Program-made: the position numbers and the translations under genes | Notes under the pieces: model-generated | The model's input: the letters and a program-made list of their open reading frames with translations, nothing else | What the model was told of the DNA's origin: nothing | The model's database searches: none | DNA from: Macrostomum lignano | Lineage: Eukaryota | Assembly: GCA_002269645.1 (NCBI GenBank) | Contig: NIVC01002966.1 | Location: forward strand, 1-29,948 | Length of the DNA stretch: 29,948 nt | Direction of reading: 5' to 3' | Shown: positions 2,733 through 29,846 of the stretch, in pieces | How positions within the stretch are numbered: position 1 is the stretch's first letter | Layout of the letters: each line of letters starts with the position of its first letter

Positions 2733-2782
2733 GATTGAGGCGGCTGGCAAAGCTTAATGGCTATAAAATAAGCTTAGCGTCT

Positions 2783-3950
2783 TTTGGTGTCGTCTGTTGT
2801 CGTCTGTTGTCTGTTGTAGTTTAGTGTTGTCTGTTGTCGGTTGGTGTCGTCTGTTGTCGGTTGGTGTCGTCTGTTGTCGTTTGGTGTCGTCTGTTGTCGT
2901 TTGGTGTCGTCTGTTGTCGTTTGGTGTCGTCTGTTGTCGTTTGGTGTCGTCTGTTGTCGTTTGGTGTCGTCTGTTGTCGTTTGGTGTCGTCTGTTGTCGT
3001 TTGGTGTCGTCTGTTGTCGGTTGGTGTCGTCTGTTGTCGTTTGGTGTCGTCTGTTGTCGTTTGGTGTCGTCTGGTGTCGTTTGATTTCGTTTGCTGTCGT
3101 TTGGTGTCGTCTGTTGTCGGTTGGTGTCGTCTGTTGTCGCTTGGTGTCGTCTGTTGTCGTTTGGTGTCGTCTGTTGTCGTTTGGTGTCGTCTGTTGTCGT
3201 TTGGTGTCGTCTGTTGTCGTTTGGTGTCGTCTGGTGTCGGTTGGTGTCGTCTGGTGTCGGTTGGTGTCGTCTGTTGTCGTTTGGTGTCGTCTGTTGTCGT
3301 TTGGTGTCGTCTGTTGTCGTCTGTTGTCGTCTGTTCTCTGTTGTAGTTTAGTGTCGCCTGTTTTCGTCTGTTGTCTGTTGTCGTGGTGTCGTCTGTTGTC
3401 GTTTGGTGTCGTCTGTGGTCGGTTAGTGTCGTTAGTTGTCGCCTGTTGTCGTTTGTTGTCGTCTGTTGTCGCTTGGTGTCGTCTGTTGTCGTTTGGTGTC
3501 GTCTGTTGTCGTTTGGTGTCGTCTGTTGTCGTTTGGTGTCGTCTGTTGTCGTTTGGTGTCGTCTGTTGTCGGTTGGTGTCGTCTGTTGTCGTTTGGTGTC
3601 GTTTGGTGTCGGTTGGTGTCGTCTGGTGTCGGTTGGTGTCGTCTGTTGTCGTTTGGTGTCGTCTGTTGTCGTTTGGTGTCGTCTGTTGTCGTCTGTTGTC
3701 GTCTGTTCTCTGTTGTAGTTTAGTGTCGCCTGTTTTCGTCTGTTGTCTGTTGTCGTGGTGTCGTCTGTTGTCGTTTGGTGTCGTCTGTGGTCGGTTAGTG
3801 TCGTTAGTTGTCGCCTGTTGTCGTTTGTTGTCGTCTGTGGTCGGTTAGTGTCGTTAGTTGTCGCCTGTTGTCGTTTGTTGTCGTCTGTTGTCGGTTGGTG
3901 TCGTCTGGTGTCGTTTGATGTCGGTCGCTCGGTGTCGTCTCTTATTAATT
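2783..3950. repeat. 20-bp minisatellite (TTGGTGTCGTCTGTTGTCGT, two related 10-mers) with a 372-bp higher-order duplication
   Basis: Direct reading; variant block CTGTTCTCTGTTGTAGTTTAGTG recurs at 3331 and 3703. Confidence 0.97.
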
Positions 3951-5784: not shown

Positions 5785-6552
5785 TGTCTCTTGGTGGGCG
5801 CTCCGTCTCTTGGTGGGCGCCCCTGTTTCTTGGTGGGCGCATTGTCTCTAGGTGGGCGCCCTGTCTCTTGGTGGGCGCCCCTGTTTCTTGGTGGGCGCAT
5901 TGTCTCTAGGTGGGCGCCCCTGTCTCTTGGTGGGCGCCCCTGTTTCTTGGTGGGCGCATTGTCTCTAGGTGGGCGCCCCGTCTCTTGGTGGGCGCCCCTG
6001 TCTCTTGGTGGGCGCTCCGTCTCTTGGTGGGCGCCCCTGTTTCTTGGTGGGCGCTGTCTCTTGGTGGGCGCCCTGTCTCTTGGTGGGCGCCCTGTTCTTG
6101 GTGGGCGCTGTCTTGGTGGGCGCATTGTCTCTAGGTGGGCGCCCCTGTCTCTTGGTGGGCGCCCCTGTTTCTTGGTGGGCGCATTGTCTCTAGGTGGGCG
6201 CCCCTGTCTCTTGGTGGGCGCCCCTGTTTCTTGGTGGGCGCATTGTCTCTAGGTGGGCGCCCCTGTCTCTTGGTGGGCGCCCCTGTTTCTTGGTGGGCGC
6301 ATTGTCTCTAGGTGGGCGCCCCTGTCTCTTGGTGGGCGCCCCTGTCTCTTGGTGCGCGCCCCGTCTTTTCGTGGGCGCCCCTGTTTCTTGGTGGGCGCCC
6401 CGTCTCTTGGTGGGCGCCCCTGTTTTTTCGTAGGCGCAGTGTCTCTAGGTGGGCGCCCCTGTCTCTTGGTGGGCGCCCCTGTCTCTTGGTGGGCGCCCCG
6501 TCTCTTGGTGGGCGCCCCCGTCTCTTGGTGGGCGCCCCGTCTCTTGGTGGGC
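5785..6552. repeat. About 20-bp GC-rich minisatellite (TGTCTCTTGGTGGGCGCCCC) with recurring variant units
   Basis: Direct reading; no unique spacers. Confidence 0.97.
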
Positions 6553-10553: not shown

Positions 10554-10992
10554 TCAGCGGAATCGTCCTGCACCTGCAGTGAGCAGGAAGAGCGGATCAG
10601 GTGACGATTCGACACCAGCAGGAAGTGGGGCGGCAGGTTGCGTCAGCTGCTGCTGCGGTGGCTGCTCCAGCGTCAAAGGTCCCGGAGCTGCCGTCTGCTG
10701 ACACCAGCTAGAGACAGTGGTGCCGCTGGTATTGGCGTTCTCAGGCCCGCTAGTGCTGTTATTGTTGCTGTCACCGCATGGTGACAAGCTGAGTTTGTTC
10801 CTGGCACAGATGGAGGCCGCTGGATAGCCGTAGATCCTGGCGTGCAACTGCTGCAGCCAGCGCTCCACTTGTTCGTCGTTGGCGAAGATGCTGCAGAACC
10901 GACCGTCGAACAGTTCCACAGGGATGCAGTGCATCAGGGCTTCCCGGCCGAGGTCGTGATCGCAGATTCGGATAAATGTGGTAATGACGTAT
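10554..10992 (-). CDS. CNOT9: CNOT9/Rcd1-like protein, exon 2 (last coding exon)
   Basis: Acceptor CATCAG at 10993. Reads (K)YVITTFIRICDHDLGREALMHCIPVELFDGRFCSIFANDEQVERWLQQL, which aligns by eye to CNOT9 [34 protein letters not shown]. Followed by a low-complexity tail to TGA at 10554. Confidence 0.88.
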
Positions 10993-11695
10993 CTGATGAG
11001 GATTAAAATACGATGATGGGTCTGCTGGGAATCTACGTTGAGACTGAAGGTAAAATCAACACACCCTCTGATGATACTGGAGGTTGTAACATCAGTGCAT
11101 GACTAGCAGTCAGCGCCCCCCCCCCCGTTGGGGAGCCAAAAAATGCAGTAAAAGTTTTTAATAAACTACATGTAGCGTCTCATTGCAGCAGCCTCAGCAA
11201 TCCCTTGTAAGCCTTGACATCTCAGCAATTCTCCCCCATAATCCTTAAAATATCAACTTTCCCCCCTCAACATCTCAGCGATGACCCCAATAAGTCTTGA
11301 AATCTTAAAAAATCTCCTGTCAACCTTCTAACCTTAACCCTAACCCTAAAGCATTGAAATTTCAGTAATTCTCCCCAAGAGAATAGCATTAGCATTACAT
11401 CATTATAGCGATTCCCTCCAAGCCGTCGACATCGTAGTGACTCCAAAATGAATCTCTTAACTTCAACATGACGCTTCTTTGATCAGCGACCCCCGTGAGG
11501 AGCCAACAAATAATTTGATAAAAAGTTTTGAATAAACTACATTTAGCTTCTGACTTTAGCCTTGACATCTCAGTTATTCCCCCGTGAGCATTGAGCATTG
11601 AGACAGCAACTATTCCCCCCGTAAGCTTTGATTTAAAATTCAAAGCCATCCTAAAACCGATAAGAAAGAATTCAATCTCTAATGGATTGACTTAC

Positions 11696-12576
11696 TTGAA
11701 AACTCGTTTAGACTGGTCGCTAAAATCTGACAGAAACTTTCTCTCTAGCCGGATTACCAATCGTCCCATCGCCCACAGCAGCTCTCTGAAGCGGTCGTAA
11801 CTGTGGCACAGGTAGTTCAACACATCGTCACAGCCTAGAAAGCTCATGAGGATCTTTAGCGCCATCGACCGGCCAACCTCGGAGATGCACTCGCCCAGAC
11901 AGAAGGTGACTAGACGGAGGAGGTCGCCTCTGGTTGGCTGTAGGTGCTGCAACAACTGCTGCGGCTCCTGACGCTGGCAGACGGTCAGAATTAGCGACAA
12001 GGTGCAGATTCTCAGGTGCTCAGTGTCGCGAGTTTTCCCTACAACGCCCAGGAAAGGGAAGAAGAGGCGCAGAGTGCCGGACTCCAGGAACGGCTGTCGG
12101 GTGCGCCTGTCAATGACCAGACGCTGCTGCAGTGCCGCCACAGAGCAGAGCAGATGCACACCTTGGCTGTCCAGGTGCGGCGGATGAATGTCCGGATACA
12201 GCCGAACAGTCTCCATCACCAGCATAGCCAGCACACCTGGAGTGCACCACAGCAGACAGGCCAAATCCGGTATGATGTCGGACTTCTTGCAAAGTTCAAT
12301 AATAGCTGAATATCGCCTAGTATTGTCGGCTAGATCGGCCAGGGACATTGCCCAGTCCAACTGCTGCTGCTGCTGTTCTTGCAGCTGCTGATAGGCAAAT
12401 TCTGAGCCGTCGAAAGTTTCCCCGACTGGACTGTCTGTCGCCCCGTTGTACAGAATGTCCTGCTGCATCAGGGGCACGGAAGCTGAGTTGGTAAAGTCGC
12501 AATAACCCCTGCTCCATTCGATATCATACGATGCCTGGTGTGAGTGCTGCATCGGGTGGTCGGAAAGGTCAGCCAT
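11696..12576 (-). CDS. CNOT9: CNOT9/Rcd1 (CCR4-NOT subunit 9)-like protein, exon 1; divergent homolog, 439 aa after splicing
   Basis: IIELCKKSDIIPDLACLLW, LYPDIHPPHL, FFPFLGVVGKTRDTEHLRICTL and LNYLCHSYDRF match Rcd1 armadillo motifs ([62 protein letters not shown]). Phase-2 donor AA|GTAAGT at 11695 is frame-compatible with exon 2. Confidence 0.9.
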
Positions 12577-14963: not shown

Positions 14964-15339
14964 TCAATCTCGTTCGCTTGGCATCAGCGAGTAGCGCGGG
15001 CAATCCCGACGCCGTTTCAGGCATCGACCGCGGTGGAGCCACCGAGCCGACCTGTCGCACACGCAGCCTCCGACGCAGTCACTGCAGCGTTCCCGTCGCG
15101 CTCTCTGTCGACCACACTGACGAAGATCGCGGCAAACGCAATTAGAGTAGCGAAATTGCGGCGGGCAAAGCTGATCACCGCCTTGCTCTTCAGAACACGG
15201 GCGCGACAGAGCCGGGTCCATGGCTAGGACGGGAATGCCAACGTTGGCGCAGTCTCGCAGGGCGGCTCGAACCACCGGACACAGACAGCGCTCTGGGCTA
15301 CGCTGGTTGCGACAGGCGCACAGACGTTCGGTGCACCAG
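14964..15339 (-). CDS. BMPER: Crossveinless-2/BMPER exon 9 (end of C8 domain, TIL domain, stop)
   Basis: (N)WCTERLCAC..CLCPVVRAALRDC..CPPQFRYSNCVC..CVGGCVC..C. AAG acceptor at 15340, frame-compatible with exon 8; TGA at 14964. Confidence 0.85.
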
Positions 15340-15605: not shown

Positions 15606-16208
15606 TTGAAGTACAACTGCACCTGCACTCGATCCGAGCAACGCAGTCTCCGAAGCGCTCCGCAATGCTGCCTACGCCATCGCCTTAAACGACGTCGTTG
15701 TTTTGGTCGACCGCGAACCTCTGGGCAGGTCGCTAGCAACCGTCTTCGTCGACTGCCTCTCCTGCTACCGCGACTGTTCCCAGCTCGACAGATACCCCGA
15801 CGCCAAGACCTGTCTGGACGCCGTCGTCTTCGCTTGGCCGTCTCGCACAGCCCCTTGAACTGATTAGCGAGACTGCGCGGCCTCGCCTGCAGTTCCAGAT
15901 AGTCAGCGCCGTCCCATAGAATTGCAAGCCGACTAGAAGCTCCGGACACTCCAGACAGCGAGACCAACGCGTGTCCGGAAACGATTTCCATAGCAACCAA
16001 CGGCTCAGAGAGTGTTGGATCAATACGTGCGAGTCCAGTTGCTAGGACAGCTCGGCTGACCCAGCGACCGTTCAGGCGAGGCTGCAGTTCGGGGCCGAGC
16101 GTGAGCCGCCTGCCAGCGCCCCATCGGATGCTGAGCGTGGCGGGTACTCGACCGCCCGCTGTGAATCTGATTGATAAGCCTGTTCGCCTGCGTCTTGCTA
16201 GGGTGTAC
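15606..16208 (-). CDS. BMPER: Crossveinless-2/BMPER exon 8 (VWD body, Arg-rich linker, start of C8)
   Basis: Acceptor TTGACAG at 16209; YTLARRRR...ILWDGADYLELQARPRSLANQFKGLC (VWD WDG..GLC motif); donor AA|GTGAG at 15605; 603 nt, phases consistent. Confidence 0.85.
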
Positions 16209-16265: not shown

Positions 16266-16777
16266 AAAATATCAAATATTCAACGTGCCAATCTTAGTAT
16301 CGAGATACCCTTAAATCGAGGACGTAGCCAAAATTTTAATCGTGCAGGGACATCGCTAGGGGCATTAACACAAGGAGCTTTAGCACCAGGGGCTTTAACA
16401 CCAACCCTCAATTCCCTCTGCTACGCTTCTGCCGTAGATACAAAATTAGGAAAGCTAGCAGTAGAATAAAAAGCTAGAAGTAAGAGTATGAGTATGTTTA
16501 CGGCTTCTACAGTCTTTAACCACTGCAAGAGCTAAATACTTCACTTTCTCTCCGTCCTGTAGAGCCGTCAGAAAATGAACTAAAAAAGTGGCACAAGTAG
16601 CGCAAGCACGAGCAGTATGTACGAGCTTATGTATGTTAGGAATGAAAAGGGTGTAAAGGGTGTAAACTTTAAATTCTTCGTTGACCGAGGACGTACACTG
16701 TAGTAGAGACATTTCCAGTTGCGGGAGGGAATTGGAAGGTAGAGCTGACGTTGGTTCGACAGCATTACTATGCTCAC

Positions 16778-16983
16778 CGACAGCCTTGAAGCATCTCGGC
16801 CGATCGAGCGTCGAAAGTTCGCAGCCTCTGCCGACTTGGCAGCCAGACGCAGACAGCCGACGCGTAGGTGTCGTTGCGTTGCTGACCGTCCGTCGATGCC
16901 AGACAGTCCAGCTGACGGCAGGACATCTGGCCAGAGTGGCAGGAGCACAGTGAGCACTTGTCGGGGCGCCACGTCTCGCCGTG
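16778..16983 (-). CDS. BMPER: Crossveinless-2/BMPER exon 7 (truncated VWC5, start of VWD)
   Basis: Acceptor CTCCCAG at 16984; HGETWRPDKCSLCSCHSGQMSCRQLDC...AVCVWLPSRQRLRTFDARSAEMLQGC; donor CG|GTGAG at 16777. Confidence 0.88.
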
Positions 16984-17301
16984 CTGGGAGAGATTTAGAA
17001 TAAAGCGGAAGTTTATGTCAGGAAAGCGTGTTGGGCTCATGGGTGCACTTCGAGTTTTTGAGTATTTGATATACGCATCATCTGATTGACTCTTGATTAT
17101 GACATGGAGACCTTGAACGAGAATCTGAAGTGTTCGGCCCCACCAAAAACACGGAGTATTAGTTTATAACTCAGTTTTGCAATTTTTTGCAAATAATTGA
17201 CTCTAGACTTTTTTTAATTCCTCGAAAGTTCATTCTGGTTACTATTGACTCTGGCCTGAGAAACAATGAGGACTGCAAGGCCAAAGATCCATCAAAGACA
17301 T

Positions 17302-17356
17302 GATCATCTTCTTCTTCATTATCAACATCATCATCATCATTATTATCATCATTATC

Positions 17357-17408
<52 letters not shown>

Positions 17409-17430
17409 CCATCATCACCATAATCATCAC
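17302..17430. repeat. (CAT)n trinucleotide microsatellite, intronic
   Basis: Direct reading; source of the polyH, polyD, polyM and polyI ORFs. Confidence 0.95.
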
Positions 17431-18181: not shown

Positions 18182-18370
18182 AGGGGGGGGGGTCGCCACA
18201 CACACACCTCCAATTACCCCAGCTAATGCTGGCACCCATTTTACGGCTGGGTGATCTGAAGCAATGCAGAGTTAAGTGTCTTGCTCAAGTACACAAATTG
18301 TTTTAGTGGGATTGGGAATCGAACCCCGGAACTCAAGTCGTGAGTCCAACGTTCTGACCACTAGGCTACA
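18182..18370 (-). mobile_element. tRNA-derived SINE with a CORE (MIR-like) domain
   Basis: Minus strand: A box TAGCCTAGTGG, B box GGTTCGATTCCC, then TGTGTACTTGAGCAAGACACTTAACTCTGCATTGCTTCAGATCACCCAGCCGTAAAATGGG, resembling the CORE consensus TGTGACCTTGGGCAAGTTACTTAAC...CTGTAAAATGGG. Confidence 0.75.
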
Positions 18371-18738: not shown

Positions 18739-18891
18739 CCGATAGCGTCTACCGCTGGAGTCGCCGCAGTCCTCCTGTCTGCGGCCACTGCTGCAGACTT
18801 TGCAACACTCTGACGGACTTGGCAGCAGCTGCTGCGACTCCGGACAGGTCAGAATCGGACAGTTAGTTCGTCGACAATGAACCGTGCCCGC
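18739..18891 (-). CDS. BMPER: Crossveinless-2/BMPER exon 6 (VWC4 C-terminal half, VWC5 start)
   Basis: AGTVHCRRTNCPILTCPESQQLLPSPSECCKVC...CGDSSGRRYR; acceptor CCACAG at 18892, donor GTGAG at 18738; 153 nt, phase 0/0. Confidence 0.9.
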
Positions 18892-19072: not shown

Positions 19073-19197
19073 CTGACATGAGCAATGGGTGCAGGCGTCC
19101 TGCCGCCAGCTGGTGCCATTGACGTACGCGGAGCCTTCGAACAGGCACTGATCCAAGCTGGTCATGCGCCTGAGACGGCGGTCTTCGCCAAATTGTT
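19073..19197 (-). CDS. BMPER: Crossveinless-2/BMPER exon 5 (VWC4 N-terminal half)
   Basis: QCLFEGSAYVNGTSWRQDACTHCSCQ; acceptor TTTTGCAG at 19198, donor CAG|GTAGT at 19072. Confidence 0.9.
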
Positions 19198-19701: not shown

Positions 19702-19886
19702 TTCTGCAACTCATGCACTGGCCGTCCATCTGTTGCACCTCACGTGGGCAGTTGGGCACGTGACAGACATCCTTGTGGCAGGCCAGAGTGCCACCCGAGC
19801 ACCGGCACACGATTGATTGGTCGTCGAATGGTCTCACGATTTCGTCTGGCAGCATCGGCAACTGCTTTAGCGAGCAACCGAAGCAG
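19702..19886 (-). CDS. BMPER: Crossveinless-2/BMPER exon 4 (VWC3)
   Basis: CFGCSLKQ...VCRCSGGTLACHKDVCHVPNCPREVQQMDGQCMSCR; acceptor CCAACAG at 19887, donor A|GTGAGT at 19701. Confidence 0.88.
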
Positions 19887-19938
19887 CTGTTGGAGAAATG
19901 CATCTGGCTTGTACTTGCATTTTAATGTAATTACTTGT

Positions 19939-19981
19939 AACTAACAAACAAACAAACAAACAAACAAACAAACAAACAAAC

Positions 19982-20026
<45 letters not shown>

Positions 20027-20027
20027 C

Positions 20028-20086
<59 letters not shown>

Positions 20087-20115
20087 GACTGACTAACTAA
20101 CTAACTGACTGACTG

Positions 20116-20194
<79 letters not shown>

Positions 20195-20259
20195 GACTAA
20201 CTAACTGACTGACTAACTAACTAACTGACTGACTGACTAACTAACTAACTGACTGACTG

Positions 20260-20294
<35 letters not shown>

Positions 20295-20350
20295 GACTGA
20301 CTAACTAACTAACTGACTGAGTAACTAATCAACTGACTGACTAACTAACT
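19939..20350. repeat. (AAAC)n followed by (CTAA/CTGA)n tetranucleotide microsatellite, intronic
   Basis: Direct reading. Confidence 0.97.
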
Positions 20351-20439
20351 ATATAAATAGAATAAGCGACTAAATAATTTCCCAGCGTTCCTGAGTCTCC
20401 CGTAATTTTACATCCCTGTTTATTATACAGAGGACAGAC

Positions 20440-20723
20440 CTGGGGCAACACTGGCCCGGCAACCTCAGCTGATACTCTGGCGAGCATGGCGGATGGCACA
20501 GCCTGCGGAACTCGGTGACAACACCTGCCACGCAGAGGCTGATCTCGCACGCATCTGACGATTGAGGCCGCTGGACCAGCTCACGATGAAGCAGCAGCTG
20601 CCGGTTGCCAGGCTGGCGAAGTCTGCAGGAGCGACAGTTCTGGCAGCAGACGTCATTCTGAGTGACGTAGCAAGAGGTGTCCACACTGGGGCACTGAGCC
20701 AGCCAACAGGAGTAAATGCCGTT
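20440..20723 (-). CDS. BMPER: Crossveinless-2/BMPER exon 3 (VWC1 C-terminal half, VWC2)
   Basis: NGIYSCWLAQCP...CCQNC...CVAGVVTEFRRLCHPPC...GQCCP; GVVTE matches BMPER VWC2 as recalled; acceptor ATGCAG at 20724, donor AG|GTCTG at 20439. Confidence 0.9.
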
Positions 20724-20976
20724 CTGCATAACGAGTCAATTTGGGAACAAAATCAAATAGCAAGTCACGCATATTCTGGTTTTCTGCTGACAAATGGAGT
20801 CAAATATCACGCTACTAAGATATTTAATGTTCTCAAAAATCAACTTGTCCACTGATCAAACAGATCAATATAGATCGTACTCATCTATCTATGCATGAAT
20901 TTCACTTTTCATCAACTTAATCAGGCATCGACTGACCAATAAAATCATCAATAGAGCTTATTTACTCATCAAAGGC

Positions 20977-21400
20977 ACTCATCTACTCACCAATAGAACT
21001 CATCTACGAGTACTAACCAATAGAACTCATCTACTAACCAATAGAACTCATCTACTAACCAATAGAACTCATCTACTCACCAATAGAACTCATCTACTCA
21101 CCAATAGAACTCATCTACTCACCAATAGAACTCATCTACTCACCAATAGAACTCATCTACTCACGAATAGAACTCATCTACTCACGAATTGAACTCATCT
21201 ACTTACCAATAGAACACATCTACTCACCAATAGAACTCATCTACTCACCAATAGAACTCATCTACTCACCAATAGAACTCATCTACTCACCAATAGAACT
21301 CATCTACTTACCAATAGAACTCATCTACTGACCAATAGAACTCATCTACTCACCAATGTAGCTCAACTACTCACTAATAGAACTCATCTACTCATCAATG
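20977..21400. repeat. 21-bp minisatellite (CCAATAGAACTCATCTACTCA), about 20 copies, intronic
   Basis: Direct reading. Confidence 0.95.
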
Positions 21401-21529
21401 GAAAAAAGCAAATCAGATTGTCTAGTCATTAATAAAATAACGGGCTTTTCCGTACTCGGTCAAAAAATCAGAATTCTCTAGAGAGAGAAACTTCTACCAA
21501 CCGAAGACATCAACAAGCGTCTCACTCAC

Positions 21530-21606
21530 TCGACAGCTGCACTGATGACACGGCGGACTAATAAAGTCCCTTATTTGTCCACTGCATCGGAGAAATTGTT
21601 CTTCAC
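21530..21606 (-). CDS. BMPER: Crossveinless-2/BMPER exon 2 (VWC1 start)
   Basis: (G)EEQFLRCSGQIRDFISPPCHQCSCR; acceptor TCTTCAG at 21607, donor GTGAGT at 21529; phases match both neighbours. Confidence 0.82.
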
Positions 21607-21676: not shown

Positions 21677-21743
21677 CAACAGAGTATGGTGATACAAGAA
21701 GCAGATTAATAAATAACAGCAATGAATTTGTGCAGATATCCAT
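21677..21743 (-). CDS. BMPER: Crossveinless-2/BMPER exon 1 (signal peptide)
   Basis: MDICTNSLLLFINLLLVSPYSVG is a hydrophobic leader; phase-1 donor G|GTGAGT at 21676; the nine exons sum to 2076 nt (691 aa plus stop). Confidence 0.78.
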
Positions 21744-21949: not shown

Positions 21950-22752
21950 GATGAAAGAGGAGAGAAAGAAAGAGAAAGGTGGGAGAGGGGAGAGATGCAA
22001 ATAGAGGTTAAAGACGGGAAGACCGAAAAAGATAGAAGAGAAGGAAGAAAGGGGAGAGGATGGAGAGACGGAGAGAGGGGAGAGGGAGAGAGGAGAGATG
22101 AGAGAGAGGGGGAGAGAGAGAGGGGGGAGAGGGAGAGAGGGGGAGAGGGAGAGAGGAGAGATGGGAGAGAGGGGGAGAGAGGGAAATAGGAGAGATGAGA
22201 GAGGGGGAGAGAGGGAAATAGGAGAGATGAGAGAGGGGGAGAGAGGGAGAGAGGAAAGATGAGAGAGGGAGAGAGAGGGAGAGAGGAGAGATGAGAGGGG
22301 GAGAGAGGGAGAGAGGAGAGATGAGAGAGGGGGAGAGAGGGAGAGAGGAGAGATGAGAGAGGGGGAGAGAGGGAGAGAGGAGAGATGAGAGAGGGGGAGA
22401 GAGGGAAAGAGGAGAGATGAGAGAGGGGGAGAGAGGGAAAGAGGAGAGATGAGAGAGGGGGGAGAGGGAGAGAGGAGAGATGAGAGAGGGGAGAGAGGGA
22501 GAGAGGAGAGATGAGAGAGGGGGAGAGAGGGAGAGAGGAAAGATGAGAGAGGGAGAGAGAGGGAGAGAGGAGAGATGAGAGGGGGAGGGAGGGAGAGAGG
22601 AGAGATGAGAGAGGGGAGAGAGGGAGAGAGGAGAGATGAGAGAGGGGAGAGAGGGAGAGAGGAGAGATGAGAGAGGGGGGAGAGGGAGAGAGGAGAGATG
22701 AGAGAGGGGGAGAGAGGGAAAGAGGAGAGATGAGAGAGGGGGAGAGAGGGAA
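21950..22752. repeat. GA-only compound repeat with an approximately 25-28 bp unit (GAGAGGGAGAGAGGAGAGATGAGAGAGGGG)
   Basis: Direct reading; nearly pure purine strand. Confidence 0.95.
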
Positions 22753-22844
22753 AGAGTCGTAAAACCCTTAAGCACTGGCGCGGTAGCGCAGATGCTTAAG
22801 CGAATTGTAGATGTTTGGAATATTTTATATTCTTCCTGAGAGGG

Positions 22845-23135: not shown

Positions 23136-23744
23136 TAAACTCAGAACGGGTTGAAATGAACTCTTCCGTACAGACCACCATATTGGATCTAGAAATCCTG
23201 ATAAAGCATCAGTGGTCGCATACGGCTTTCTAAGAAAAGCAGTGAAAGTCGGTTCTAGCTAAGTTAGAAATAAAAAAAACTGTTTAGAGTCCAGCGCGCT
23301 AACAGTCATGAGCCCACTTTGGCTGGTCAATTGCATGTGACTTAAGTGAAACTTTTCAGCGGGCAGCTCAACTGATAAGAGCTCAGCACTGCAATTGACT
23401 TACAGATTTTTGTGCCTAGATATGCCATGCTCTGTTATCAAAGCCCTGTCTCACTCTACAGGTCATAAGGCTAACTGGTTTCTACACTGTAAAGCGTTGA
23501 GCATTGAGAAGCAGGGTATTCGTTTCTGCTTTGGATTTTGGAGCTAACAATTTTGAAATCAGAAATGCGAGAGCGGCAGCTGAACTGGTGCCAGCTGGCA
23601 GTCTGTCTAGCTACCCTAGTTAGCTTGGCTGAGTGTGGACGTGCGTCTTATTGTTCGAAAGTGGAAAATGAAGGTTAGGTTCTGCACTATTGTATTTAGC
23701 GTTTGCTTTGACCTTGGTATATACTGAAGCCTCGATAGCACCCC

Positions 23745-24325
23745 TAGATCCACCAAAGGACCCCTTAATCCTCCAAATGACCCCAAGATCCTCTAAAGGA
23801 CCCATGTTCCTCCAAAGGACTCCTTGATTCTACAAGTAGCCCCTTGGTTCCACAGAAGACCTCTTGATTGTTCGAAGGGCCCTTTGATCCTACAGGAAGC
23901 CCTTGATCCTCCAAACGACCCCTTTGATCTCCTAAAGGACTCCTTGATCCTACAGAGGACCCCACGATCCTCCAAGACATCCTTATCCTCCAAAGGACCC
24001 CATGATCCTCTAAAGGACCTCATGATCCTCCAAAGGACCTCATGATCCTCCAAAGGACCCCATGATCCTCCAAAGGACCCCATGATCATCTAGCGGACCT
24101 CTTGATCCTCAAGCGGACTTCTTGATCCTCCAAAGGACCTCATGATCCTCCAAAGGACCCCATGATCCTCCAAAGGACCTCATGATCCTCCAAAGGACCC
24201 CATGATCATCTAGCGGACCTCTTGATCCTCAAGCGGACTTCTTGATCCTCCAAAGGACCCCTTGATACACCAAAGAACCTCCCATTGATCCTTCAGCAAA
24301 CCTCTTCGTCCTTAACGATCCTTCA
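23745..24325. repeat. 20-bp minisatellite (TGATCCTCCAAAGGACCCCA) with short higher-order duplications
   Basis: Direct reading; variant TGATCATCTAGCGGACCTCTTGATCCTCAAGCGGACTT recurs 120 bp apart. Confidence 0.95.
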
Positions 24326-26355: not shown

Positions 26356-26781
26356 ACACCGCAAGGCACCTACTGCCGTGACCGGATCAGGACCAAGCCT
26401 CTGCCTGACCTGCACCCAATCATGACCTTCACCTGGGAGGTGATAGCCGGACGTGCTGAAGCGCTGGACTCGGTCTTTTATGGGAGATTAAGCTACGACA
26501 GCTCGCAAAACATGGTCCGCTACGACTACAGAGAGCCCGAATCCATGTACAAAGGTCCATTTTACAATATAGGCACCCTGACTGTTATTCACGACTTTAA
26601 TTCTGGTGTGGCTTATTATATCGACGGAGTGAGAGGGAACTGCACAGACCAGGCCATCGGGTCCGAGTTCATCGACACGAACGATGTGGACATCATCGAC
26701 TCGCCTGGTTGGCACCTGGTTGAGCTGAGGAGTCCTAAAGACCTGTTCCGGTTCGATGACTCTTACCAGTATGAGGGCAAG
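26356..26781 (+). CDS. Ependymin/LolA-like repeat-domain protein, exon starting a second repeat; gene continues
   Basis: TPQGTYCRDRIRTKPLPDLHPIMTFTWEVIA...YDSSQNMVRYDY...IHDFNSGVAYYID...GNCT...DLFRFDDSYQYEGK; TTCTAG acceptor, AAG|GTAAG donor; 426 nt. Confidence 0.88.
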
Positions 26782-26797
26782 GTAAGGCGTTTCTGGG

Positions 26798-27415
26798 CGC
26801 TTACGGACATTTCCCCTCCGGCGTTTCCCCTCCGGACACTTCCCCTCCGGCGTTTCCCCTCCGGACACTTCCCCTCCGGCGTTTCCCCTCCGGACATTTC
26901 CCCTCTGGATATTTCCCCTCCGGACATTTCCCCTTCATCTATAACGAAATAACAGTGCCTTCGGACATGTCCAAAGAGAACATAAGTTGCATGTATATAT
27001 ATATGTATGTATAGCAGCATAGCCACATATATATTAATAATAAAGAGAATAATAATATATTATATTATAATTTTATTATAATAAAACCTATAATAAAACA
27101 TAATAAAACCATCTACTCTCACTTTTTACTTACATAATTTTTAAAATAAAAGCGATCTAACAGCATAACTACATGGATGTGACGAACATGCGTGCAAAAC
27201 TTTTTTTGGCATGTTCTGAAGCTCTGTTATTTCGTTATAGCTGGATGGGAAATGTCCGGAGGGGAAACGCCGCCGAGGGGAAATGTCCGGAGGGGAAACG
27301 CCGCCGAGGGGAAATGTCCGGATGGGGAAATGTCCGGAGGGGAAACGCCGCCGAGGGGAAATGTCCGGAGGGGAATCGCCGGAGGGGAAACGCCTGAGGG
27401 AAATGTCCGGTAGCC
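26798..27415. mobile_element. Non-autonomous foldback (Mutator-like) MITE, 618 bp, with a 9-bp TSD
   Basis: Exact direct repeat GTTTCTGGG at 26789-26797 and 27416-27424. Ends CGCTTACGGACATTTCCC versus reverse-complemented GGCTACCGGACATTTCCC. Each arm is an array of 14-15 bp CGGACATTTCCCCTC units plus unique inverted sequence (TATAACGAAATAACAG) around an AT-rich spacer. Confidence 0.85.
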
Positions 27416-28452: not shown

Positions 28453-28524
28453 AAAAGATTTTTTTATTAAAACACCTTAAAAACACGAAATGCTAAACAC
28501 AAAAAAGCACAAAGTCAAAATTAA

Positions 28525-29846
28525 AAGAGCCACTATATCGAACATTAAAGAGCCACCATGTCTAACATTAAAGAGCCACCATGTCGAACATTAAAGAGCC
28601 ACTATGTCAAACATTAAAGAGCCACCATGTCGAACATTCAAGAGCCCCATGTCCAACATGTATGTGACTCCATGTCAAACATTAAAGAGCCACCATGTCA
28701 AACATATATGTGACTTCATGTCAAACAGTAAAGAGCCACCATGTCAAACATTAAAGGGCCACCATGTCGAACATTAAAGAGCCACCATGTCAAACACTAA
28801 AGAGCCACCATGTCAAACATAAAAGGACCACCATGTCAAACATTAAAGAGCACCATGTCAAAAATTAAACAGCCACCATGTCTAACATTAAAGAGCCACC
28901 ATGTCAAACATAAAAGATACACAATTTCAAACGTAAAAGTAAGCGTCATGTCAATTTTAAAGGAGCCACTATAGAGCTAAGGAAATTGTTGCACTAGCTA
29001 CTTATTGTCTGGTGGATGCTTACTATTTGGGGATGCTTGCTATCTGGGGGATGCTTGCTATCCGGGAGGGGGGATGCTTCCTATCTGGGGGATGCTTGCT
29101 ATCTGGGGGATGCTTGCTATCTCGGGGAATATTAAAGAGCCACCATGTCAAACATTAAAGAGCCACCATGTCAAACATAAAAGAGCCACCATGCCAAACA
29201 TAAAAGAGCCACCATGTCGAACATTAAAGAGCCACCATGCCAAAAATAAAAGAGCCACCATGTCAAACATAAAAGAGCCACCATGTCAAACATAAGAGAG
29301 CCACCATGTCACACATAAGAGAGCCACCATGCCAAACATAAAAGAGCCACCATGTCAAACATAAAAGAGCCACCATGTCGAACATTAAAGAGCCACCATG
29401 TCACACATAAGAGAGCCACCATGCCAAACATAAAAGAGCCACCATATCAAACATAAAAAATACACAATTTCAAACGTAAAAGTAAGCGTCATGCCAATTT
29501 TAAAGGAGCCACTATAGAGCTAAGGAAATTGTTGCACTAGCTACTTATTGTCTGGTGGATGCTTACTATTTGGGGATGCTTGCTATCTGGGGGATGCTCG
29601 CTATCTGGAGGGGGATGCTTGCTATCTGGGGATGCTTGCTATTTGGGGGATGCTTGCTATCTGGGGGATGCTTGCTATCTGGGGGATGCTTGCTATTTGG
29701 GGGATGCTTGCTATCTGGGGACGCTTGCTATCTGGGGGATGCTTGCTATTTGGGGGATGCTTGCTATCTGGGGGATGCTTGCTATCTGGGGGATGCTTGC
29801 AATCTGGGGGATGCTTGCTATCTGGGGGATGCTTGCTGTCTTGGGA
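28525..29846. repeat. Composite satellite: [23-bp array + about 90-bp spacer + 18-bp array] x2, spacer copies 543 bp apart
   Basis: Unit A AAACATTAAAGAGCCACCATGTC, unit B GGGGGATGCTTGCTATCT; near-identical spacer at 28918 and 29461. Confidence 0.95.

Follow-up and report, generated by a model that had tools for sequence, protein, structure and literature searches.

A divergent BMPER/Crossveinless-2 family gene of Macrostomum lignano without the GDPH self-cleavage motif

The DNA analysed here, referred to below as the window, is a stretch of 29,948 nucleotides from Macrostomum lignano (NCBI GenBank assembly GCA_002269645.1, contig NIVC01002966.1, positions 1 to 29,948), and it carries a minus-strand gene resembling BMPER/Crossveinless-2 (Cv-2) that runs from 21743 to 14964. 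Rebuilt independently, outward from exon 7, this gene has 9 exons and 691 codons and ends in a TGA stop; all 8 introns are GT-AG, with all 16 splice sites canonical. The encoded protein appears to be laid out as a signal peptide (a hydrophobic N-terminus judged by eye), five VWC domains, a VWD, a C8 and a TIL domain. Exons 3 to 9 have a GC content of 58–64% against 32–44% in the introns, the short exons 1 and 2 lying outside that exon range. A stop-free run of 691 codons has a chance of about 1e-10, given the base composition of the coding sequence, and the two alternative frames of the coding sequence contain 15 and 20 stops. The intact 691-aa frame, signal peptide and splice sites that an earlier note on this DNA had described were recovered in the rebuild (the signal peptide by eye), and its view that the gene does not look like a pseudogene agrees with the open frame, the canonical splice sites and the selective retention of cysteines described below.

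Translation starts at the ATG in exon 1 (21677..21743), which encodes the predicted signal peptide MDICTNSLLLFINLLLVSPYSV(G) and ends at a phase-1 donor, GTGAGT. The first half of VWC1 (EEQFLRCSGQIRDFISPPCHQCSCR) is encoded by exon 2 (21530..21606), and its second half together with VWC2 by exon 3 (20440..20723), where an HMM match covers 20732-20412 and corresponds to hmm 56-157. VWC3, lacking C2 and one cysteine of the CC pair, lies in exon 4 (19702..19886). Another splice choice at exon 3/4 was dropped, as only the chosen junction yields the consensus CCPxCxGC. Exon 5 (19073..19197) encodes a linker and the first half of VWC4, exon 6 (18739..18891) its second half together with the beginning of VWC5 (CGDSSGRRYR), and exon 7 (16778..16983, donor GTGAGC) the remaining part of VWC5 subdomain 1, a 17-aa linker and the start of a VWD without GDPH. 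An Arg-rich, degenerate VWD core follows in exon 8 (15606..16208) along with the first part of C8; the exon contains the polybasic ARRRR/T (16198-16181; here and below, a slash within a polybasic motif marks the putative cut) and KGLCETAK (15856-15833), with one Cys where the family has CGLC. C8 is completed in exon 9 (14964..15339), which also encodes the TIL domain and carries the TGA stop. All of these features lie on the minus strand.

Directly downstream on the minus strand is an Rcd1/CNOT9-like gene (10554-12576) with at least two exons, represented by open reading frames of 294 and 126 aa. CNOT9 is normally among the most conserved eukaryotic proteins, and this copy looks unusually divergent, with Pfam Rcd1 matches of only 110 and 37 bits, which could mean that the genome or region evolves fast or that the gene is a paralog. 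By a rough count by eye, the Rcd1-like open reading frame also seemed poor in Lys and rich in Arg. On the plus strand, a 198-aa open frame at 26356-26949 has a weak Ependymin match (Pfam E 0.15) and may be an exon of another secreted-protein gene. The window is dense in 18-23-bp minisatellite arrays, (AG)n and purine-rich tracts, with repeat tracts at 104-392, 2779-3923, 5785-6552, 17299-17429, 19938-20351, 20945-21403, 22037-22756, 23740-24279, 28514-29482 and 29551-29845. Repeats inside the BMPER-like gene include a 21-bp array in intron 2, (TAAC)103 in intron 3 and (CAT)44 in intron 6. Rfam and tRNA scans of the window returned no matches.

Comparators were collected with human BMPER as a query lead, which retrieved 393 proteins; the top 120 of these were all vertebrate BMPERs, at up to 95% identity. 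A profile (A1) built from ten vertebrate BMPERs was then run against 1.84 billion representative proteins, and the best 150 matches included BMPER-length proteins aligned in a single stretch. Named by source, the BMPER-like comparators came from Cherax, Amphibalanus, Oratosquilla, Drosophila, Tubulanus, Ruditapes and Styela, joined by an unnamed Meganyctiphanes protein and a 'crossveinless' protein of the xenacoelomorph Meara. Queries with the full model and with aa 24-370 against a 5.8-billion-protein index found no relatives; for the full model, Arg-rich words may have filled up the list of 8000 candidates. Exact look-ups of two open reading frames of the window and a metagenome scan yielded no related contig either.

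Against the model protein, the vertebrate BMPER profile produced one collinear domain of 121 bits, aligning hmm 61-682 to model residues 36-681. When 270 retrieved proteins were compared by phmmer, the best single-domain matches were of BMPER type (led by the crustaceans Cherax at 139 bits and Amphibalanus at 124, then Tubulanus 123 and Drosophila 117). Per domain, BMPER-type proteins scored 102-139 bits, whereas multi-VWC, KCP-like proteins reached at most 75 and obtained higher totals only by summing many repeats, each at or below that value. The model has only five VWC domains, not the long VWC array of the KCP type, and these five units are collinear with VWC1-5 of BMPER. Pfam recognised VWC above threshold in 4 stretches; on sub-segments, C8 was also above threshold (30.9 bits), and VWD (12.6 bits, E 0.17) and TIL (15 bits) were weak. 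Sub-HMMs built from 20 BMPER-type proteins gave the model 180 bits for VWC1-5, 20 for VWD, 36 for C8 and 18 for TIL, and every region outscored all 1000 composition-matched shuffles. In a neighbour-joining tree, KCP-like sequences separated from the rest in 100 of 100 bootstrap replicates, and the model formed a long branch of uncertain placement, basal to the BMPER-type clade, so that it may be an ortholog or a divergent paralog.

Intron positions were compared with BMPER loci mapped in the barnacle Amphibalanus amphitrite, Drosophila navojoa and the clam Ruditapes philippinarum. Half of the model's introns (2, 5, 6 and 8) fall at the exact alignment column and phase of barnacle and/or clam BMPER introns: intron 2 is matched in barnacle, fly and clam, intron 5 in clam, intron 6 in barnacle and clam, and intron 8, in phase 2, in barnacle and clam. 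Intron 1 lies within 2 alignment columns of the first intron of all three genes, in identical phase. Introns 1 and 4 agree with the reference genes in phase and in their place relative to anchor residues, and are probably also shared with them; introns 3 and 7 are absent from all three. The intron between VWC5 and the first VWD strands occupies three places in barnacle, clam and fly (VCT/VFGDPH, CVE(S)/RAVC and SFQ/GSCKY, slashes marking the intron). The model has none there and has its own unique intron 7 after QGC(R); the rearranged stretch of exon 7 (16778-16983) runs across the place where that intron is missing. In barnacle and clam the gene is split into 13 exons, and the nemertean BMPER-like sequence (P0212, Tubulanus polymorphus OZ123232.1, L002 1001-3166) is a single uninterrupted open reading frame of 2166 nt, which may be a retrocopy. 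No synteny was seen with the barnacle or nemertean loci.

The collinear architecture, the best single-domain matches and the conserved intron positions together support placing the gene in the BMPER/Cv-2 family, at the level of sequence and gene structure, and so uphold the homology proposed in the earlier note. The model resembles vertebrate, Drosophila, crustacean, mollusc, nemertean and xenacoelomorph BMPER/Cv-2 in its apparent domain layout and in its length of about 690 aa, and canonical BMPER in having a basic C-terminal half, 64-65 of 73 conserved cysteines, and 4-6 of its 8 introns at the same positions and phases. It differs from canonical BMPER in lacking GDPH, VWC5 subdomain 2, one VWD disulfide pair and one VWC3 pair.

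The GDPH site itself was read from the minus-strand translation of 16770-16989, which gives ...HGETWRPDKCSLCSCHSGQMSCRQLDCLASTDGQQRNDTYASAVCVWLPSRQRLRTFDARSAEMLQGCR followed by the GTGAGC donor. The VWD begins with CVWLPSRQRLRTFDA (16851-16807, aa 342-356), in which the Cys equivalent to human C364 and TFD are kept. In a MAFFT alignment with 20 BMPER-type proteins, 19 of the 20, spread across Bilateria, carry C..[FY]GDPH[YF].T[FY]D; in the model, LPSRQRL (16842-16822) fills the FGDPH[YF] columns and no Asp-Pro bond is present. Both the replacement motif and the missing Asp-Pro had been reported in the earlier note, as had the early end of VWC5, and translation and alignment agree on each. The last residues of VWC5 are SCRQLDC (16923-16903); C7-C10 are absent, so that the 10-Cys pattern lacks its subdomain 2, and a 17-aa linker, LASTDGQQRNDTYASAV (16902-16852), stands in place of subdomain 2 (CP...CCP.C).

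An alternative exon that supplies GDPH was sought throughout the window and rejected there. The tetrapeptide is absent from all six frames of the whole 29.9 kb, the remaining two frames of exon 7 contain nothing like it, and a three-frame scan of 22000-14800 with the BMPER family HMM matched only the exons of the model, in the model's frames. Close to the gene, GDP occurs only once (...RCVCGDPPP, at about 18183-18284 on the minus strand in intron 6); this tripeptide was judged a chance occurrence, because a stop follows it, no VWD similarity surrounds it and no HMM match covers it. A compensated frameshift behind the altered GDPH region and the Arg-rich VWD was likewise rejected: the other frames have no BMPER similarity and in-frame anchors lie on both sides, the altered stretch being flanked, in the same frame and exon, by the well-aligned residues GQQR, AVC, TFD.R and QGC.Y.

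In GDPH cleavage, the Asp-Pro bond is hydrolysed by acid catalysis. Cleavage is abolished by the P370L substitution in human BMPER (PMC6456722) and by mutation of the Asp or Pro in FCGBP (PMC8267560). The model differs from the autocleaving GDPH-VWD proteins (MUC2 D4, FCGBP, RGM, SUSD2) in having no Asp-Pro in a GDPH context, and its product would not be expected to self-cleave, given the absent bond, the established chemistry and the behaviour of these mutants.

The loss of GDPH is part of a wider change. In leave-one-out comparisons against family profiles, the VWD of the model scored 20 bits where every other BMPER tested scored 183-229, so that the picture of an otherwise normal BMPER with one motif replaced, which the earlier note had drawn, is not supported in that form. 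The difference was smaller for C8 (36 bits against 66-99) and for VWC1-5 (180 against 222-326). Outside the cysteines, the VWD of the model is 16-27% identical to those of BMPERs, while BMPERs of different phyla share 42-46%; in the VWC region the corresponding values are 15-24% and 22-27%. The VWC array has thus diverged about as much as BMPERs have between phyla, whereas the VWD, normally the best-conserved part of BMPER, is stripped of nearly all family conservation. Since this affects the whole domain, the absence of GDPH is one sign that constraint on the domain as a whole has been relaxed or has shifted, and not a clean motif swap; the model represents a derived member of the family, not a new mechanism. 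AlphaFold2 applied to exon 8 with a shallow alignment (15 vertebrate BMPER rows) was uninformative (mean pLDDT 39.5).

Cysteines have been kept far better than other residues, with 64 of 73 conserved Cys retained against 36 of 82 conserved non-Cys positions (Fisher p = 7e-9). The nine cysteines counted as lost include one in TIL, at reference position 642, which was discarded as a MAFFT misalignment, C..C.C being intact by eye. The mature protein has 66 Cys, an even count. The disulfides of CV2 VWC1 are C1-C4, C2-C8, C3-C5, C6-C9 and C7-C10 (PMC6270503). The absence from VWC3 of C2 and of one cysteine of the CC pair is consistent with the loss of one disulfide, and in VWC5, by analogy, the loss of C7-C10 leaves C2 and C6 able to pair together. 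The VWD lacks the Cys of TKDC and the first Cys of CGLC, which we take, by analogy with VWF D3, to form one disulfide pair. On these assignments, the lost cysteines fit whole disulfide pairs. In human BMPER, the C364-C497 disulfide straddles the cleavage site and tethers the two fragments (PMC6456722); the cysteines that align to them in the model, C342 and C487, are both present.

The protein is 15.2% Arg and only 1.3% Lys. Net charge rises from +6 in the VWC part to +20 in the VWD (pI 11.9) and +31 in C8 plus TIL, which makes the C-terminal half hyper-cationic, at about +51 with 17-24% Arg. Basic C-terminal halves also occur in other BMPERs, especially those of arthropods, but are less extreme. 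The Arg-rich, Lys-poor composition may in part be compositional drift rather than selection. Motifs of the form RX[KR]R lie at aa 212, 371 (LARRRR/T), 492-493, 519, 539, 542 and 646.

BMPER/Cv-2 can promote as well as inhibit BMP signalling, and the role of GDPH self-cleavage in this is disputed (PMC6456722, PMC2654123). In BMPER, the half at the C-terminus mediates heparan-sulphate binding and short-range action (PMC6456722, PMC8377005), and in VWC1 of zebrafish CV2, Ile27 is a contact with BMP-2 (PMC6270503). VWC1 of the model has the C1-C4 and C3-C5 cysteines; its C1-C2 loop is 11 aa long instead of 16 (5 aa shorter), a His stands at the Ile27 position, and there is no Gly in the clip. With a divergence similar to that between BMPERs of different phyla, the VWC array probably still serves to bind ligands, with BMP, chordin or Tsg-type proteins as putative partners. 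The role as a BMP modulator put forward in the earlier note is not supported in the form stated, and its suggestion that BMP gradients might be shaped in a different way is speculation.

Natural absence of GDPH is rare in the BMPER family but not unique. A BMPER-type transcript (P0260; Logan SRR21676462 contig 7527, L005 349-2493), which groups with the barnacle in the neighbour-joining tree, reads CTAFGDSGYKTFDG, with GDSGY instead of GDPHY and TKDG instead of TKDC. It shares with the model the missing Asp-Pro and the missing Cys of TKDC, but its VWD is otherwise conserved (183 bits), its VWC5 complete and its composition normal, and it is therefore a cleaner natural case of motif-only loss than the window gene. 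Human BMPER with the diaphanospondylodysostosis mutation P370L (GDLH) likewise has no cleavable Asp-Pro, and both its secretion and its inhibition of BMP in culture persist (PMC6456722). Unlike the model, that protein carries just one pathogenic change in a VWD that is normal in other respects; it is prone to proteolysis extracellularly and is linked to loss-of-function disease, while in the model the whole VWD is remodelled in a presumably viable wild-type genome.

Among the retrieved vertebrate BMPER entries shorter than 1000 aa, 79 lack GDPH, many of them annotated isoforms. In the six that were aligned, the motif is lost through exon skipping; the GDPH-less entries include P0014, P0024, P0086, P0089, P0091 and P0100. 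Mammalian X2/X3 isoforms of 575 aa, which are database predictions, skip approximately aa 360-470, and predicted isoforms of alligator (X3) and ibis skip exactly the exon that codes for the end of VWC5 subdomain 2 and GVCTVFGDPHY...FQ, the same two elements that are missing from the model. These vertebrate forms are computational predictions of alternative splicing beside a canonical isoform, however, and in them the segment is removed, not replaced. In other families, about 37% of the motif-pattern-matched VWD starts in multi-VWD matches have no GDPH, and in human FCGBP this holds for 2 of the 13 VWDs (PMC8267560). Multi-VWD proteins (VWF, FCGBP, mucin-like) thus resemble the model in that VWD folds without GDPH work without autocleavage, but they belong to other families and architectures, and their VWDs are still clearly recognisable by sequence.

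On balance, and with only somewhat better than even confidence, we read the locus as an intact gene for a functional, secreted, single-chain, matrix-bound derivative of BMPER/Cv-2. Under this explanation, the VWD would have been released from its usual constraints, keeping its disulfide skeleton while losing GDPH and nearly all family-specific residues, shedding one disulfide pair and turning extremely arginine-rich. Without an Asp-Pro bond there would be no acid-catalysed self-cleavage, so a single chain is predicted instead of the two-chain BMPER. The polycationic C-terminal half (about +51) could hold the protein on heparan-sulphate-rich cell surfaces or matrix, where it would act as a short-range, non-diffusing binder. 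That the protein is secreted, stays uncleaved, binds matrix or acts on BMP signalling in any way is predicted from the sequence. Counting against this explanation, VWC1 differs at known BMP-2 contact features and Pfam barely detects the VWD (12.6 bits); the genome may also carry a canonical BMPER at another locus, in which case this gene would be a redundant, drifting paralog.

That last point leads to the view, which we think unlikely, that the gene is a decaying or redundant copy, drifting towards a pseudogene after duplication or after the need for the VWD was lost, and has no BMPER-like role. About 90% of the VWD family score is gone, together with GDPH, VWC5 subdomain 2 and three further cysteine pairs; the VWC1 contact features are altered, AlphaFold2 confidence is low, searches of the 5.8-billion-protein index with the model found no relative, and the adjoining Rcd1-like gene is abnormally divergent too. 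Decay fits poorly, however, with 691 stop-free codons (P ~1e-10) and 16 of 16 canonical splice sites, with cysteines kept far better than other conserved residues (p = 7e-9), lost in pairs and left at an even 66, with a VWC divergence no greater than that between phyla, and with the sharp GC contrast between exons and introns. It is also doubtful that we are dealing with a neofunctionalised, lineage-specific paralog beside a canonical, GDPH-bearing BMPER, for example a polycationic matrix or adhesive protein. The long branch outside the BMPER-type clade in the neighbour-joining tree, a basic charge of VWD and C8/TIL beyond that of other BMPERs, and introns 3 and 7, not shared with the three reference genes, would suit such a protein, but exactly five VWC domains, the domain order and the 4-6 common introns argue for direct descent from BMPER, and arthropod BMPERs already have basic C-terminal halves.

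We regard it as very improbable that GDPH is missing only because of a mistake in the assembly or consensus, or because an exon was modelled wrongly, with the motif present in the true transcript. Intron 7 is unique to the model and the VWC5-GDPH intron of barnacle, clam and fly is missing, as a mis-modelled exon might produce, but GDPH occurs in none of the six frames of the 29.9-kb window and no out-of-frame or intronic sequence matched the BMPER HMM. Moreover, the altered stretch lies within one exon, in frame between well-aligned residues, and the decay covers the whole 166-aa VWD, beyond the reach of any local error, which together make an artefact unlikely. A variant on the cleavage question, to which we give little credence, is that self-cleavage has been replaced by cutting by a furin-type convertase at LARRRR/T, giving a disulfide-linked two-chain form under cellular control. 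LARRRR/T (aa 369-375) fits a polybasic convertase motif perfectly; it follows the lost GDPH site at a distance of 20-30 residues and sits between C342 and C487, the equivalents of the tethering cysteines. If this were true, the switch between cleaved and uncleaved BMPER would be regulated.

The window gene alone opens no new mechanism, and its interest is a modest one, as a natural deletion experiment in which cleavage, VWC5 subdomain 2 and most of the VWD sequence are gone while the VWC array and the disulfide skeleton are kept. This suggests that the lineage retains a need for the protein without cleavage, VWC5 subdomain 2 and most of the VWD sequence, and that these parts are dispensable there. 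A VWC array joined to a cationic anchor may then be the minimal functional unit.
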